Part shown: piece by piece, positions 8,543-64,000 of the stretch
Numbering within the stretch: the stretch's first letter is position 1
Layout of the letters: every line of letters starts with the position of its first letter
From: Heterodontus francisci
Taxonomy: Eukaryota
NCBI RefSeq assembly: GCF_036365525.1
Contig: NC_090404.1
Location: 8,618,001 to 8,682,000 of the forward strand
Direction: 5' to 3'
DNA: 64,000 bases
Program-made: the position numbers and the translations under genes
Notes under the pieces: generated by a model
The model's input: only the letters and a program-made list of their open reading frames with translations
The model's database searches: none
Told to the model about the DNA's origin: nothing

Positions 8543-9046
8543 ATGTGGAACCGTCTATCACCGCTTCTCATCATTATATCACTTCTCAGTAAGTATTTCC
8601 TTCTCAGTAAAAGTCCGCTCTCCCCCTGACTGCTGTAATCCAGATGTTATTGTTGGTAAAATAATAGTGATGGTGGTGTTGAGGGTTATGTTGATCAATA
8701 TGAGGCAAATTCTGATTGCTGATATTACTATTTTTCTGTTAGAATGGAGCCACCAAGACACAGTGGAACAGCCGGTTGCTGAAATAACAGTCGAAGAGGG
8801 ATCTAAAGTCACAATAACCTGCACCTTGAAAACAAGCAGTTCTAACCCTTATGTGTACTGGTACAGTCAGCGCCCCGGGCAGCCTCCACACAACATACTT
8901 CGTCTTATTGGAGGGAATCTATACAGGAACACCGGCATCACTGTTCGGTTCTCGGCTACGTTTAATAAAACTGCCAAGATTACCGAGATAACGGTCGGCA
9001 ACACCCTGATCTCCGACAGCGCCGTGTATTTCTGTGCCATGAGCCC
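8543..9046 (+). CDS. TCR V alpha/delta segment, apparently intact (leader 8543-8588, V exon 8743-9046)
   Basis: MWNRLSPLLIIISLL|GTAAGT; V exon ..DTVEQP..VTITC..YVYWYSQRPGQPP..DSAVYFCAMS; RSS CACACTG (9047-9053), 24 bp by my count, ACAAAAACC (9078-9086). Confidence 0.85.
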
Positions 9047-18695: not shown

Positions 18696-19212
18696 AGTTT
18701 TTGTCCGGCGGGAAGCCGAGGTCTATCACTGTGTGTTGTATCTGTACTCAGCTTCACAGTAATAGGTGGCGCTGTCTTCAACTTTCACATCCTGAATTTC
18801 CAGCGGAAATGTCTTTTCTGCCCGATTCATCGACACATGAAATGGGCCTCCGCTGGAGAGCCGCTCCCGCTCTGTCCCGGTCTGGGTTTTTCTGAAGAAA
18901 CGTCCATCTTGGAAAGGATAATCTCAGTTAGCACCATCGTAAACACAGGTGATGGTGAGAGACTGACACTCCTTCCTGGTCACCGCTGCCGGGGTCTGTG
19001 TCACTGACTGACTGAAAGAGCCTGGAAATTAAACAGAGAGAGTTGAATAGGCCATCAGAGCCGAACCACACAACGAGGCTAAAGCCCCAGACAGTGCCTG
19101 CAATTCGGATGGACTCAGGCAGCTTTATATTAAATCCACACAATGTCGGTGTGTTTGATCGGTACTCACGGTATAAACAGACACACAGGGTGAAAACAAG
19201 GAGGATTCCCAT
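18696..19212 (-). pseudogene. NAR-TCR V pseudogene (orphan)
   Basis: Leader MGILLVFTLCVCLY (19170-19212); V exon 18734-19021 QSVTQTPAAVTRKECQSLTITCVYDGAN*..YYCEAEYRYN with in-frame TGA at 18924-18926; RSS CACAGTG, 22 bp, ACAAAAACT; closely paralogous to 59791-60274. Confidence 0.85.
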
Positions 19213-25914: not shown

Positions 25915-26170
25915 AGTATTACTGTACTTCGTCTCACCTTTATCTGTTTCCCTCTATTGGTGTCTCTTTGTATCACTATATTCCGTCTCACCTTTAACTA
26001 TCTACCTCTGTTGGTGTTTCTTTGTGTCGCTGCGCTGAGTCTCATTTTTATCTATCTCTCTCTGTGTTTGTCTCCATGTTATCACTATACTCAGTCTCAT
26101 CTTTATCTATCTCCCTCTGTTGGTGTCTCTCTGTATTACACATTTTATTCAGTTTCACCTTCATCTCTGT
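25915..26170. repeat. Degenerate tandem repeat, about 57 bp unit
   Basis: Recurrent TCACTATA..GTCTCACCTTTA..CCTCTGTTGGTGT. Confidence 0.6.
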
Positions 26171-38479: not shown

Positions 38480-39260
38480 TGGCATGTGTTTGACGGTAAA
38501 GTGTAAAGGAAGCTTTAATTTGTATCTGATCTGTGCTGCACCTGCCCTGGGAGTGTTTGATGGGACCGTGGAGAGGGAGCTTTACTCTGTTTTTGACACG
38601 TTTTTGTTTTTCTTTTTTTAGGAGGGAGACGGGATCACGTCGGGCGCTGTGCAATGAATTCAGAACTGAATCACAGTGTCGAGGGAGCTTTACTCGATAT
38701 CTAACCCTTCATAGTGAGGTACTGCTTGAACGCCAGGTTATTCACTACCTCCATGTCGCATTTATTGGTGGCCTATAACAGGTAGTGGCAATGAGAATAG
38801 AGGGGTGCTTTACTCCGTATCTAACCCCATGATTTTTCTTTTTTTCCTAACCCCGTGCTGTACCTGTCCTGGGAGTGTTTGATGGGGGACAGTGTAGAAG
38901 GAGCTTTACCCTGTATCGAACCCCGTGCTGTACCTGTTCTGGGAGTGTTTGATGGGGACAGTGTAGAGGGAGCTTTACTCTGTATCTAACCCCGTGCTGT
39001 ACCTGTCCTGGGAGTGTTTGATGGGACAGTGTGGAGGGAGCTTTACTCTGTATCTACCCCATGCTGTATTTGCCCTGGGAGTGTGTGATGGGACAGTTTA
39101 GAGGCAGATTTATTCTGTATCTAGCCATTTTTTTTCATTTTTCTTTTTTTCTTTATCAGCCAGGGTTCCTGCTCCTGATCTCTATCTTACCCTTGCTAAA
39201 TCTGATCTGAGAGTGATTGGCCAGGCAGCGTTCAAGGAGCATTTATCTGCATCTAAACAA
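38480..39260 (+). repeat. ~68 bp tandem satellite
   Basis: TGTATCTAACCCCGTGCTGTACCTGTCCTGGGAGTGTTTGATGGGACAGTGTAGAGGGAGCTTTACTC units. Confidence 0.85.
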
Positions 39261-51098: not shown

Positions 51099-52849
51099 GG
51101 CCATTTCACAAATCTCTGAAAGTATCATTGGTAAAAACCTGAAGAAATTGCCCCAGACCATTAAATCACTGCTTCATTCTTTATTCCTCGTTTAAATGAT
51201 CGGTTGGACTTCGGACTCTGTGGATTTTTCTTATCTGTTTCTCACTATTTCTGCATTCAGACAATGAAATGTGTTGTCTTGGTGATTCTCAAAGTTAAAT
51301 ACCTTCAGTTAATCGATCCGAATCTACCACTGAGACAAAAGGAAAACGTGAATTCCAACATTCTGTTTGAAAAATCCATTCGTGTGTGAGATAATCGTGG
51401 CTATAATGTTTGACAGTTGCTTGACTATTTCAGATGCATGTAAATAAAGTTTCTCATTCCTTATTTATACTTGTTCCCTTCCCTTTATCTTGAGTCTTTG
51501 TTTTTCCCGGAGCCTGGGGCCTATGTGACACAGAGACACGAACACACACAAAACCTTGGAAAGGTTCACAGAGACTGGGGCCCCAGGACATTGCAAAAAG
51601 CGCAAACTCTGGCATTTATTCACATAGACTGGGGCTGATCTGACAAATCTATCTCTGCCACAATCTCGCACCTTCCCCCCTCATATCCATGGCCTCCTTC
51701 CCTCTCATCTCATTCACCGTATCCTTAATTTCTCCCCGGGCTCCCGTTGAACCTCGGCTCGGGTAGCTCAGAAGGTATGAGATCACTTTAAGAGGCCGGA
51801 GTTCACCCCCGCCACCGGGGTCACAGTCCTGGGTCACGAACCACATTCAGCACAAGCAGAAGTTCTTCATCACTGAACGGAGGATGATGACGCCCCTTGA
51901 CCCGGATTGAATGTGAGAAACAGCCCATCGCGGCGCTGTGACATAAAACAGGATTGTGACGTCTTCCGCGAGAGGGCAAACCGGTGGCCATCTTTGTTTG
52001 GCTGAAAACACTGTAAATGTCTTCCGTTTCTGTCTATAAATCACCTTTATTGAAAGGAACAGTGACTTAAGTTTTCATTAAAGAAGCCGTTCGATCTAAA
52101 AGGATAAACGCGAATGTTTGGTCAAGGGACACTTTTAAATAATTGTCCTTAAAGCGGTTGGGGTGATGCGCATGTGCGGCCCGTTCTCCCAGAGAGCAGC
52201 ACGGTCCGTACTGCAGATGGGGGCCTTTCACAGCCGCTGTGAATTGTGGGAGAAGCCACCCTCAATCACCCAATTATTAACTGAGTGTTTGCAAATCCAC
52301 AATAAAAACAGGAAGTGCTGGTGATACTCAACAGGTCAGGCAGCATCGGTGAAGAGAAAAACAGAGTTAACGTTTCAGGTCTCTGACCTTTCATCCTCCT
52401 TCCAGCAGGGACCTGCCCAGGCTATTGGTCCAGAAGGACTGCGGATGTCTGTTGAACGGAGAATCTCTGATTGGACAAAGAATCCTGGAAATCCCAGGAG
52501 GTGTTCATCAACGCAAACGGGAAAGATGGATTCGAACAAAGAAAAAAAAAGAAACTTTACTGGTCCCTGTGAAAACCGGCGCACAATATATTTAACCTGT
52601 AGGGTGAGACACGACTAAGCAAAATATACATTTTTATGGAAAGAATCACTTTATGTACTCAGAAAGAAGTGAGAATGTGGAGTAAATGCAGGATTAATTT
52701 AATAGAGGAAACGAATAGGAGATGAGAAAAGAGCAATGCTGAAGGGTGTGAGTAGGAAAAGGAAAGTGCAGACTGAATGAGCTTAATGAAGTTTTGCTGC
52801 ACGGTAAAATTCTACGATTAATTGAAATTGAATATTTATACACTTTTGC

Positions 52850-53243
52850 CATGCTCTATATCACTGCGTCTCTGCCATTCACACCATGTGCAGGTTTTTG
52901 TTCAGCTCTCTCCGTGCTCTGTATCACTGTGTGTCTGTAATCTACACTATGTTCAGGTTTTTGTACAGCTCTCTCCGTGCTCTGTATCACTGTGCTGTAA
53001 TCTTCACTATGTTCAGGTTTTTGTACAGCTCACTCCGTGTTCTGTATCACTGTGTGTCTGTAATCCCCGCCAAGTTCAGGTTTTTGTACAGCTCTCTCCG
53101 TGTTCTGTATCACTGTGTGTCTGTAATCCCCACCACGTTCAGGTTTTTGTACAGCTCTCTCCCTGTTCTGTATCTCTGTGTGTCTGTAATCCCCACCATG
53201 TTCAGGTTTTTGTACAGCTCTCTCCCTGTTCTGTGTCACTGTG
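52850..53243 (-). repeat. Tandem array of six 23-RSS (60-63 bp period) plus a decayed seventh unit
   Basis: Plus-strand GGTTTTTGT-23-CACTGTG: nonamers at 52893, 52956, 53016, 53079, 53142, 53205; heptamers at 52925, 52988, 53048, 53111, 53174 (CTCTGTG), 53237. Confidence 0.95.
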
Positions 53244-53549
53244 CTGCGCGCCGACTCAGTTCACAGTAATACACAGCGGAGTCGCTCAGTTGCAGATTGG
53301 AGATTTTTAACCGGCTGATTTTCTCGGCAGGATCGATAGAAGCAGAAATTCGTCCCCCGGCTGCGGTTTCTTTATTATCCGCTCCTGAAGTTTGTATCTG
53401 AAGCAGGTATTTCGGAGCCTGCCCTGGGGACTGACGGTACCAGTGTACTGTGTACTGACAGAACCCTGAATATTCGCAGCTTAAAGTAACGGTGTCACCG
53501 GCAGCAGAGGTTTGCAGAGGCGGGCTCCGGGACACCAGGGAACTGGAAT
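53244..53549 (-). CDS. NAR-TCR supporting TCR V-delta (leaderless, CDR1 Cys)
   Basis: CCTGCAG acceptor; DSSSLVSRSPP..VTLSCEYSGFCQYTVHWYRQSPGQAP..DSAVYYCELSRRA; perfect 23-RSS; no ATG leader seen upstream; phase matches the J donor at 58916. Confidence 0.9.
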
Positions 53550-55039
53550 CTGCAGGATAAAAATGAATATTATCAATGTTTAGCCGGCGTTTACGCGGAG
53601 AAACTTGTCAATCGCAGGAATAGTTCTTTTTTTCGCGGTAATTTGCGTAATTTGACGCCTGTTCGAAATGTATTCACCGTTACTGAGATATGAACCAGTG
53701 CGGAGATGATGTGTATTTTATTTTGCACAGGGAGTTGTTCTGATCTGGAATGCAATGTCAGAATGGGTGGTAGAAGCAGATTGATATTAACTTTCAAACG
53801 GGATATGGATAAATGTTGGACCAGGAAAATGCACGGGTCATGGAGGAAAAGCAAGGGGGAATGGGAACAATTGGACAGCACCGACAAAGACGATGGGCCG
53901 AATGACATCCCTCCATGTTGTCTGATTCAATGATTCTATTGAATTTCTGTGTCTATTTTTCTTGGTGGAAGGCAAACTGGAGGAAACATTTTAATATCAG
54001 TGAGAGAATCACTTTACAAAAACTGTCAGTCCGAGAGTGTTATTTCAGTACGCACAGTAAGATCCAACAGAGAGCAATGAAATTCATCAGCACAGATTGA
54101 GCGAAACTGACAGTGAACATCAAAGGTCATTCGTTGACAACAGTTCAACACTACATGAGAGCTCATTGTTGCCTTTCACTCTATTTGTCTAGTTTCTTGC
54201 ATCAAAAGGGCCCATTTGTCTCTATTTCCCTCTAATTTGAAAAAAAAATGAAGTTAGTTTCATTTTATTTCTACATTTACTTTGTGCTGTTTGCGGTTCT
54301 TGCCATCATGGGAACTTGTCCCGAAGTCTCTCAGTTGTCAGTTGGGTTCAGTTTGTGCTATTTCCGCAGTGGTTTTACTGTTACTGACTGGGAACTGGCT
54401 CTTCTGGATCACTGACAATTTCAATTCCTTCAGCCCATTGGATAATTCACTCCTGTGTTCTCCAAGCGGAGTTTTCTCTGAATTTTATTTTGTACAGAAT
54501 CTGCAGAGCAGGAACAGGCCATTCGGCCGAACCGTTCTATACCAGTGTTTGTACTCCACACAAGCCTCCCGCGCCCGGACTCTAATTAACCATTTCCACC
54601 CTGAACCCTCTGTCCCTCTATTCATTGCTTCCTCCTTTTTTTTTCAAGTCGGCCCATAAATGCATCAATCCGATCGACTCCAACCACTCCATGTGGCAGC
54701 GAGATCCACATTCTGCCCTGTCTCTGGGTAAATGAATCCTGCTTAATTAATTTATTCCGTCAGTGACATCATATATGAATGTCTCCTTATTCCGGATTCA
54801 CCCACAGAAAATAGTTTCTCCATATCCAGCAGCCCATAATTTAAAAATGTCCATGAAGTCTCATTATTTTTCTCTGTTTTCCAGGGGAAAGAAGCCCAGC
54901 CTGTTCAAACATTCCAGATGGTTGTTGATTTTTTTCAGGATTTCTCAGTTTTTCAGGAGGAATATACGTTCCTCTAAGATTCAAAAACCCAACAGGAAAG
55001 ATGAATTAACCATGACTAACAAAACAAGTTAAAGATTAC

Positions 55040-58916: not shown

Positions 58917-58980
58917 CGGCTGTGACAGTCACCACCGTCCCGGATCCATCTGCAGAATCATCCTTCCAGTAATTATATAC
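58917..58980 (-). CDS. NAR-TCR J segment
   Basis: VYNYWKDDSADGSGTVVTVTA G|GTAAGT; 5' RSS: heptamer 58981-58987 consensus, 23 bp, nonamer ACAAGAAGT 59011-59019. Confidence 0.9.
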
Positions 58981-59385
58981 CACAGTGACACCGCTACCAG
59001 TCACCCTGGTACAAGAAGTACCGACACCTCAATCTCCCAGCCGCACATCACCAGATAGTTGGTGATGCTCAATTATTCCAGGGGTTTTAAATCATTTCAC
59101 AATATTCCCTTGTTTCACAATCCATATCTGTTCAAACTGTTCTTTTTGAGACTCTGAGCTCTTAGTGAAATGGCCCAGGAACAGGGGCCGGATTTGGGCG
59201 CTTGATATAAAAGGAGAATAATGTCAATGAATAATGTCAAAGAAAGCGAACTGAAAGGAGGAAATTACAGTGAAATTAAACCAGATTACATCGATAATAA
59301 TATCAATCCTACAATTCAGGATCTGGACCTGGGGTATTTATATTTGGATTTTACAGAGGTATTTGCTCAGATCTCAAACACTGTG

Positions 59386-59399
59386 AATATCCCAGTAAA
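59386..59399 (-). other. NAR-TCR D segment (TTTACTGGGATATT) with 12/12 RSS
   Basis: Plus strand: GGTATTTGC-12-CACTGTG [D] CACAATG-12-ACAAAATCC (59358-59427); all three minus-strand frames are open. Confidence 0.9.
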
Positions 59400-59790
59400 C
59401 ACAATGTCTCAAGTCAGCACAAAATCCCCCGGTACCGGGTGAGATGTGGGGACATTAGTTTAACAGCGGAGACTGCGGTTCCCGGTTCCAGCTGATAGAT
59501 CAGGATCCCATCTGGTGTTAGGAATTTGGAACTGGGATCAGTCATTCCCAATCTCCATTCACTGACACAAAGCCCGGGAATGACATCACCATCCGCATAC
59601 ACTCGGTATTTATAAAACTCAAGATGTTAACGGAAACAATCCAATAACATTATAAACTAGACTGTGGGACGGACGGTGCGAGGGGGAACTGTGGGGTTTA
59701 ACGGCAGATTAACTCCGTTTTTTGATTTGTTTCTGTGATTATCTGCAGTGAGAGTTTTTGTACCGCGGGAAGCCGAGGCCCATCACTGTG

Positions 59791-60274
59791 TGTTCTTGTA
59801 CCTGTACTCAGCTTTACAGTAATAGGTGGCGGTGTCTTCAACTTTCACATCCCGAATTTCCAGAGAAAATGTCTTTTCTGCCTTATTCGTCCTCACAACA
59901 AATCGCCCTCCACCAGAGATCCGCTCCCGCTTGGTCCCGGTCTGGGTTTGTCTGAAGAAATATCCATTTCGGAATTGATAATTCCAATACCCACCTTCAG
60001 TGTAAACACAGGTGATGGTGAGAGACTGACACTCCTTCCTGGTCACCGCTGCCGGGGTCTGTGACACCGACTGACTGAAAGAGCCTGGAAATTAAACAGA
60101 GAGAGTTTAATGGGCCATCAGAGCCGAACCACACAACGAGGCTAAAATCCGAGACAGTGCCTATAATTCGGATGGACTCGGGCAGTTGATATTAAATCCA
60201 CACAATGTCGGTTTGTTTGATCGGTACTCACGGGGTAAACAGACACACAGGGTGAAAACAAGGAGGATTTCCAT
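59791..60274 (-). CDS. NAR-TCR V segment, intact (leader 60232-60274, V exon 59791-60084)
   Basis: MEILLVFTLCVCLP|GTGAGT; QSVSQTPAAVTRKECQSLTITC..GYFFRQ..RERISGGGRFV..KTFSLEIRDVKVEDTATYYCKA: IgNAR-like (short FR2/CDR2, ERIS.GGR), extra FR1 Cys; RSS CACAGTG, 22 bp, ACAAAAACT (59753-59790). Confidence 0.92.
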
Positions 60275-62695: not shown

Positions 62696-63200
62696 ATGTA
62701 GAACCGTCTCTCGCCGCTTCTCATTATTATATCACTTCTCAGTAAGTATTTGCTTCCCAGTAAAAATCCATTCTCCACAGAGCTGTTAATATGGGTGAAA
62801 TGATAGTGATGATGGTGTTGATGGTTAGATTGATCCATATAGTATTGATGCTCATTGTACTATTTTTTGTATGTTTGAATGGAGCCACCAAGACACAATA
62901 TAACAGCCGGTTCCTGAAATGATGGTTGAAGGGGAAAGTAATATCACACTAACGTGTACCATGAAAACAAGCATTTCTAAAACTTTGCATGTTCCCGTAC
63001 AGTCAGCACCCCGGGCAGCCTCCACAGTACGTGTTTTATCTCTATGGGGTGATAGTTCACCGGAACCCCGACTTCACTGAACGATCCTCTTCTACCTTCA
63101 GCAAAACTGCCAAGATTACCCAGCTAAAGATCCACAACTCCCTGATCTCTGGCACCGCTGTGTATTTCTGTGCCATCGGGTGCCATGAGCCCCACCCCGC
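62696..63200 (+). pseudogene. TCR V pseudogene, paralogue of the 8543 and 16323 Vs
   Basis: Leader ATG TAG (stop at codon 2); acceptor lost; ..GTAVYFCA..; RSS decayed. Confidence 0.8.
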
Positions 63201-64000
63201 TGCAGAGATGTTGCTGACACCGGATTCACTGAGAGTTGCAGTTAGAGCTCACCAGAGGGCGCCCTCACACCAGTAAACAGAAGCAATAATTCAGCCTCCA
63301 CTCTGAGATTCTCAGGAACCTTCTTAAAATTGCAATGAAGCACAGCAATCAACAGCCACAGCTGATGTCCACTTGTGCAGTTATATTAGACAGTGATTAC
63401 AACGCACATTTATAAGAAAAATGAACTTTATATTCGATTTCTGATGCCTTGGCTCCCTTTTTGTTTTCCGATGCTCTCCCCCTGTCCACTTGTTCCTCAT
63501 TATCGCGTGGCTCCACTGTTCACCGAAAAGTGAATACTTTTCCTTTTTAAACCTTCAGTTTAAAGGTTTAAAACTTTTGTTTCTGTTCAGAATATAAATG
63601 CAGAACCGTTCCAATCGAGCTTCTAGAAGCAGGAGCTGTGGGATCCGGCCAAAGGCTCAACACAGAATCCCTCACATCCTGTTCACTGCCATCTGACCAC
63701 TACCCAGTACAGCCACCAGAGGGCGGCAGATAGCAATACTCCTTTCATGGATCAAACGTTGGGCAGTAAGGTGATTTCTGTTTCTCCAAAAGCTGAGTAA
63801 AACTTGGAATATATAGAAGTTTAATACTTGAAATCAATTTACCTCAATGGATTGGGAATGTACATTGAATAATAATCCTCACAAAGATGCATCCACGTAT
63901 CGAACGATTGGTTTCTGATACTAACCAGTGAGCAGGACAAGTGAGTGGAAGTTGTGGAAGATGGTGAAAGAATATTAAAATGTGAATGACAAACACACTC

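Follow-up and report, generated by a model that had tools for sequence, protein, structure and literature searches.

Six intact 23-RSSs (recombination signal sequences with a 23-bp spacer) lie head to tail behind the V-delta exon that supports the NAR domain in a shark NAR-TCR cassette. Gene segments normally carry a single RSS, and V usage is attributed to RSS quality, chromatin and locus folding. The array described here is real and seems to be undescribed: its RSSs are ordinary, and what seems to have no precedent is that they stand in tandem, a feature linked to the supporting Vs of the NAR-TCR. Like the first-pass annotation of this DNA, which knew of no V gene with such an array, a full-text literature search, weak on subscription journals, found no published description of tandem RSSs behind a V. 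We favor reading the array as a minisatellite inherited within the V family, neutral, whose distal units would be competent yet non-productive targets for RAG, and we put the probability of this reading at roughly 0.6. All coordinates are positions within the 64 kb stretch of DNA analyzed (the window), and the array is read on the minus strand, 3' of the V exon.

On the minus strand, the V exon runs into six head-to-tail units, each composed of a 23-RSS and a flank of 21-24 bp (Table 1). TRF reported the array at 52855-53243 with a period of 63, 6.2 copies, 90% matches and a score of 582, which makes it a head-to-tail repeat with a unit in the 10-100 bp range of minisatellites. Heptamers start at 53243, 53180, 53117, 53054, 52994 and 52931, and the heptamer-to-heptamer periods moving away from the V are 63, 63, 63, 60 and 63; the series 63, 60, 63, 63 and 63 given in the first-pass annotation is correct when read along the plus strand. 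The flank (TGAACATGGTGGGGATTACAGACA) is 24 bp in every unit except unit 4, which is 60 bp long because its flank is 21 bp. Five of the six heptamers are CACAGTG and the one in the second unit (RSS2) is CACAGAG, while ACAAAAACC is the nonamer and 23 bp the spacer length in all six. Each unit thus has the sequence of a 23-RSS (a heptamer starting with CAC, a spacer of 23 +/- 1 bp and an A-rich nonamer). An exact scan for CACAGTG-N21-25-ACAAAAACC found five matches in the array and one at another V in the window, against 0.00 expected in the shuffled window, and a relaxed scan brought in the CACAGAG unit. TRF and the RSS scans together confirm the original proposal that the V's own 23-RSS and its flank had been amplified head to tail, and the scans recovered the motif counts and spacers listed with it. 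The V reading frame also ends where it was said to end, reading GCA GCA CAG TGA across the first heptamer, with the last base of the stop codon supplied by the spacer. Finally, the fractional "0.2" copy reported by TRF is a decayed seventh unit at 52868-52831, whose alignment score of 32 compares with 15.8 +/- 3.1 in shuffles (1/2000 shuffles scored as high). Its CGCAGTG heptamer lacks the CAC start and, judged on this sequence, RAG would not be expected to cut it.

Table 1 Features of the RSS array, its host exon and the NAR-TCR cassette, with positions in the window
Feature	Positions	Strand	Basis
RSS1, the V's working signal, CACAGTG-23-ACAAAAACC	53205..53243	-	RSS scans; expressed junction adjoins
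RSS2, CACAGAG-23-ACAAAAACC, heptamer position 6 T>A	53142..53180	-	relaxed RSS scan
RSS3, consensus 23-RSS	53079..53117	-	RSS scan; contigs bridge to unit-2 flank and RSS2 nonamer
RSS4, consensus 23-RSS, flank 21 bp	53016..53054	-	RSS scan
RSS5, consensus 23-RSS	52956..52994	-	RSS scan
RSS6, consensus 23-RSS, flank most diverged	52893..52931	-	RSS scan; 537-nt DNA contig enters unit
Decayed seventh unit, CGCAGTG, 22-bp spacer, ATAAATATT	52831..52868	-	local alignment to unit consensus
Supporting V-delta exon, leaderless, preceded by splice acceptor	53244..53549	-	translation, Pfam V-set, RNA contigs
Leader exon of NAR-TCR V, ATG 60274-60272, donor GT 60231-60230	60232..60274	-	sequence
NAR-TCR V exon, intact, ending ...DTATYYCKAEYRYKN	59791..60084	-	translation; Pfam V-set, E=7.6e-11
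Single RSS of NAR V, CACAGTG, 22-bp spacer, ACAAAAACT	59753..59790	-	RSS scan and sequence
NAR D, 14 bp (59399-59386), between two 12-RSSs	59358..59427	-	RSS scan and sequence
NAR J: 23-RSS (heptamer CACTGTG 58987-58981), coding 58980-58917, donor gtaagt	58917..59019	-	sequence

The exon that carries the array has a splice acceptor (ctgcag/at at 53550/53549) and no leader of its own. Its translation (SSSLVSRSPPLQTSAAGDTVTLSCEYSGFCQYTVHWYRQ...LSDSAVYYCELSRRA, with final residues YYCELSRRA) matches Pfam V-set (E=5.3e-19) and has an extra Cys in CDR1 (SGFCQYT; the exon reads CEYSGFCQYTVHWYRQ) that is absent from the conventional Vs of the window. The closest database proteins have this CDR1 Cys too: one is a 72%-identical fragment and the other a Callorhinchus milii Ig-like protein (51%). 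The motif reads SGICQST in P0001, the best protein relative (72% identical), which ends before its RSS, and SGFCGQN in P0002. The rearranging NAR V, D and J, the last with the translation ...GSGTVVTVTAG, all lie upstream of the supporting V-delta on the minus strand. This layout (leader, NAR V, D with two 12-RSSs, J, intron and a leaderless V-delta with an extra Cys) is what we take to be that of the shark NAR-TCR, the doubly rearranging TCR-delta cassette reportedly described by Criscitiello, Saltis and Flajnik in 2006 (PNAS 103:5036). In that work, the extra CDR1 Cys of the supporting V-delta is said to bond with the NAR domain. A 2006 description of the doubly rearranging shark NAR-TCR is cited in PMC5931798 and PMC12227049.

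Two DNA-type and two RNA-type runs from one sample, the only one whose runs contained the locus, were aligned to 52500-53700 as Logan short-read contigs, which show the presence of a sequence and not its ends or amounts. RNA contigs cover the supporting V-delta exon. In the RNA-type run X6, a 368-nt contig runs over the V exon and, beyond 53550, carries the final 30 bases of the NAR J in reverse complement; the J is therefore spliced onto the supporting V-delta. The cassette is thus expressed and productively spliced, and the array-bearing V is the supporting V-delta of the NAR-TCR cassette, an identity that had been assigned in the first-pass annotation and that the spliced contig now establishes. 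Both the J-to-V splice in RNA and the layout are as reported for the shark NAR-TCR. A second X6 contig follows the V to 53245 and then continues with 90 bases of non-germline, D/J-like sequence not in the window. Such a departure from the germline one base short of the V end marks a V(D)J join made at RSS1, and the proximal RSS is therefore used. Among these contigs, which are insensitive to such products, there were no junctions at RSS2 to RSS6, and at the same low sensitivity there were no transcripts with retained RSSs joined to D/J.

The contigs also bear on the array itself. One 537-nt DNA contig passes from unique distal DNA into unit 6, and the path from RSS3 through the unit-2 flank to the RSS2 nonamer is bridged by a 60-nt DNA contig (53074-53133) and by a 93-nt contig from the RNA-type run X5 (53074-53162), junctions that require units standing in tandem. 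The contigs report neither insertions nor deletions against the window. Hardly any 31-mer of the array recurs in the window, which makes assembler stutter unlikely; the same judgment in the first-pass annotation is further borne out by contigs from other runs of the same sample, which support three junctions. The count of six units rests on the assembly, since none of the contigs reaches across the entire array. In the distal flank, the only DNA contig (52500-52920) differs from the window at 5 of 421 positions (52599, 52659, 52692, 52775 and 52844); X5 has three of these five differences, and the window's letters are absent from these contigs. The variants come from a second haplotype, in which case the locus is highly heterozygous, or else from a paralog of very high similarity.

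This array is not the only one of its kind in the genome. The array-only 60-mer at 53074-53133 occurs once in the window and has a k-mer depth of 62-66, against 8.8-15.8 in the flanks. This is 4-7 x the single-copy depth for a sequence that is unique in the window, and further arrays of this kind must therefore lie outside it. Among the loose contig ends are the end of a paralogous V (…YYCALSRR…) directly next to an RSS whose spacer resembles that of unit 5, a unit junction in which the flank has another length, and a locus in which the flank runs into unrelated DNA. In the DNA runs, the supporting V exon (53244-53549) has a k-mer depth of about 90-200 versus 9-16 in single-copy flanks, and many variant contigs align to it; there are therefore about ten close paralogs of the supporting V in the genome. 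Together, these data point to arrays behind several paralogous supporting Vs. The first-pass annotation had named privacy to this haplotype among the joint signs of a neutral minisatellite, and the depth of the array 60-mer argues against such privacy. Beyond this genome, the exact double-RSS pattern had no match in metagenome contigs, and a protein-guided scan with the supporting V was likewise empty.

How such an array could arise is suggested by its internal pattern. Units 1-3 differ pairwise at 3-4 positions and units 4 and 5 at 3, unit 6 differs at 8-11 from all others, and unit 7 is decayed. Similarity between neighbors with decay at a free edge is the pattern that replication slippage or unequal exchange yields. 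The most likely origin is therefore slippage or unequal exchange over the RSS and its ~24 bp flank; the array would then have been inherited through duplication of the NAR-TCR cassette, with copy number changing since, while exchange would homogenize the interior units and the free distal edge would decay. A neutral minisatellite is further supported by the lack of any relative of the unit elsewhere in the window and by three other minisatellites with 54-69 bp periods in the 64 kb. The region is prone to repeats of ~60 bp and, because minisatellites of 54-69 bp period are frequent here, one that falls over the RSS of a single V family is not improbable. In period (63), copy number (6.2), identity (90%), likeness of neighbors and decayed edge, the array resembles an ordinary minisatellite; it differs in that its unit is a complete recombination signal in an antigen-receptor locus, so that each copy is a potential site of programmed breakage.

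By sequence, the competence of an RSS depends on a heptamer that begins with CAC, on three A's in a row in the nonamer and on spacer length (PMC2212273). RSS2 to RSS6 have consensus or near-consensus heptamers, 23-bp spacers and consensus nonamers, and RAG should therefore bind and cut them in competition with RSS1. RSS2 is probably weaker than the other units because its heptamer is CACAGAG. On plasmids, two RSSs in cis share one partner by quality and not by position (PMC2212273). On chromosomes, RAG scanning from the recombination center favors convergent signals met on the way (bioRxiv 10.1101/2020.06.30.181222). Whichever unit is cut, RSS1, which abuts the V, would be the only one able to give an in-frame chain; the stop at the first heptamer would make any join at a distal unit non-productive. 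A distal join would nonetheless retain the proximal RSSs, and re-rearrangement would be possible only with a further downstream 12-RSS. From the frame and RSS rules we thus reach the same expectation as the first-pass annotation, that distal joins would be non-productive and would keep the proximal signals.

The first-pass annotation had offered three functions for the array, namely a RAG-capture amplifier, a "retry ladder" for serial rearrangement and a decoy. None has direct support: the sole junction is at RSS1, motif conservation is marginal and unit 7 is decayed. As worded, the retry ladder offers no gain over a single RSS because distal joins are out of frame and each spends a 12-RSS, and a ladder would be of benefit only if capture of the cassette were the limiting step. 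This leaves, as an unlikely alternative, a selected RAG-capture amplifier or docking ladder, in which many 23-RSSs enlarge the target for the D-delta/J-delta recombination center and so favor engaging the V that supports a NAR domain already rearranged on the same chromosome. In the docking version, an out-of-frame distal join would bring the cassette beside D-J-C and the retained proximal RSS would finish the gene.

The alignment of units shows what the first-pass annotation had described, differences that lie mostly in spacers and flanks and grow distally, with the flank the most variable part of the unit. One of 16 heptamer and nonamer columns varies, against 15 of 47 spacer and flank columns (one-sided Fisher p=0.037), which favors the capture reading and counts against neutrality, since it suggests possible constraint on the distal RSSs. 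When the edge flank of U6 (unit 6) is left out, however, the comparison is 1/16 versus 10/47 and is not significant (p=0.16). The lower variability of the motifs is therefore weak, holding for all columns and losing significance without the flank of the edge unit. Moreover, the motifs contain no CpG and several of the variable sites look like CpG decay, and the seventh unit has decayed in heptamer and nonamer alike. All six units keep the 23-bp spacer and an A at spacer position 5, a position that is commonly conserved in RSSs (PMC2212273), and the array is not very young (units differ by 5-15%) and yet retains five of six perfect heptamers and six of six perfect nonamers. Overall, a single array provides no evidence that the extra RSS copies are kept by selection.

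The family distribution can likewise be read in two ways. Arrays are apparently a trait of the supporting V family only, the conventional Vs of the window having none, and this restriction could reflect the needs of a doubly rearranging gene and not descent alone. Set against this for the capture reading are the single junction seen, at RSS1, the lack of RSS-retaining D/J-joined transcripts in the low-sensitivity contigs, and the cost that each distal join spends a 12-RSS partner and is always non-productive. Its fullest form, in which tandem arrays are a selected, family-wide adaptation that enlarges the capture target, docks through distal units and lets the proximal RSSs complete the NAR-TCR gene, strikes us as doubtful; if true, it would be the first natural case of recombination-signal dosage steering V choice.

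We regard as improbable a selected decoy or attenuator, in which the extra RSSs draw off RAG cuts, making productive use of the cassette rarer or later than that of conventional V-deltas. Competition in cis among signals of equal quality (PMC2212273) would place only about 1/6 of cuts at the productive site, and RAG scanning from downstream would meet the distal units first (bioRxiv 10.1101/2020.06.30.181222). Attenuation would, however, be achieved more simply by weakening a lone RSS, expression and productive splicing of the cassette are clear, and there is no evidence of selection. Low-level RNA contigs from X5 over parts of the array and the DNA beyond could instead hint at a role outside recombination, with an architectural or transcription factor binding the flank or spacer, or a germline transcript acting, and the RSS a mere passenger. 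Such a role is quite improbable: judged by eye, the flank TGAACATGGTGGGGATTACAGACA matches the CTCF core poorly, it is the most variable part of the unit, and the ratio of RNA depth between array and distal flank matches the DNA copy ratio. Lastly, an assembly artefact or wrong copy number (one RSS or another number of units) might be entertained since the array is unspanned and variant junctions show similar units elsewhere that could mislead an assembler, but it is very improbable given that the units differ, that very few 31-mers recur, that the distal flank-unit 6 and RSS3-unit-2 flank-RSS2 nonamer junctions are supported by contigs from separate runs of the same sample, and that the contigs report no insertions or deletions.

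The X5 contigs are of low depth and lie at 52686-52914 and 53074-53162, on parts of the array and DNA beyond it, which suggests read-through germline transcription of unrearranged cassettes, though carry-over of DNA in the library may account for them.

Compared with the canonical 23-RSS of a V (CACAGTG, 23-bp spacer, ACAAAAACC), each unit has the defining sequence and RSS1 is used; the difference lies in number, with one RSS behind each of the window's conventional Vs and the NAR V and six intact RSSs here at 63-bp spacing, five of which abut non-coding flank and not a gene segment. To our knowledge, published descriptions of the NAR-TCR mention no multiplied RSS behind the supporting V. Signals for secondary rearrangement are known, among them the cryptic heptamer of VH replacement, the kappa-deleting element with the intronic RSS, and serial V-alpha to J-alpha replacement. 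In those systems a retained RSS permits a further round of recombination, as a distal-unit join would; those signals, however, are single, often cryptic, separate sites with a proven role in editing, whereas here identical full RSSs stand in tandem. The array also resembles the plasmid substrates with two RSSs in cis (PMC2212273), in which like-oriented RSSs compete for one partner, but those were engineered and involve two gene segments, whereas here six RSSs with near-identical spacers occur naturally on a chromosome.

With near-identical consensus RSSs spaced at 63 bp on a chromosome, behind a defined class of V, the locus offers a ready-made natural experiment. The pattern of cuts over the ladder in thymocytes would distinguish first-met scanning from equal sampling by RAG, and a role of signal dosage in steering the repertoire could be tested by relating array length to how often each cassette is used. 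If distal units are cut, one expects non-productive alleles with RSSs left over for another rearrangement, and such alleles bear on how sharks manage two V(D)J events per chromosome. Should RAG never cut the distal units, then even a perfect RSS sequence would not be enough for cutting in vivo.

Several other readings of the repeat were rejected. It is not a dispersed repeat, since outside the array the window contains only 13-16-bp chance or RSS-motif matches to it. Nor is it a coding repeat: two plus-strand frames (162 and 127 aa; 52822-53310) are open across all of it, a mechanical result of 63- and 60-bp units that contain no stops in those frames, but they are antisense to the V and most likely meaningless. 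The flank is not a relic of the V 3' end, with which it shares only ATTAC of the YYC region, nor a V-proximal CTCF element, as its plus strand (CCACCATGTTCAGG) departs by eye from CCASYAGRKGGCRS at several core positions. A scan for bacterial promoters and terminators was empty and is irrelevant here.

The rest of the window contains further V segments and repeats. The other Vs end at 9046 (+), 11013 (-) and 30501 (+) and have one RSS each, or a decayed RSS; no other V in the 64 kb is followed by an RSS array. A second NAR-TCR-type V at 19022-18737 (-), with a leader ATG near 19211 and 71% identity to the first, has an in-frame stop (…VYDGAN*DYPF…) within 18737-19211 and a single RSS with a 22-bp spacer (18733-18696). 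Behind it the RSS scan turned up neither a D nor a J, and the DNA that follows is repeat-like; the sequence suggests a pseudogene cassette that lacks a supporting V. A decayed V at 62880-63210 (+), related to the V at 8740-9046, has lost its WY motif and has no recognizable RSS behind its YFC motif, and is probably also a pseudogene. Minisatellites outside the array include one at 38847-39123 (69 bp x 4.0, 90% identity) and one at 25916-26168 (54 bp x 4.1). Dispersed-repeat-like DNA flanks the cassette at 52300-52410 and 53700-53900, and it probably explains why runs from six other organisms (B-G) show a word share of 0.07-0.09 (7-9%) with the query stretch.
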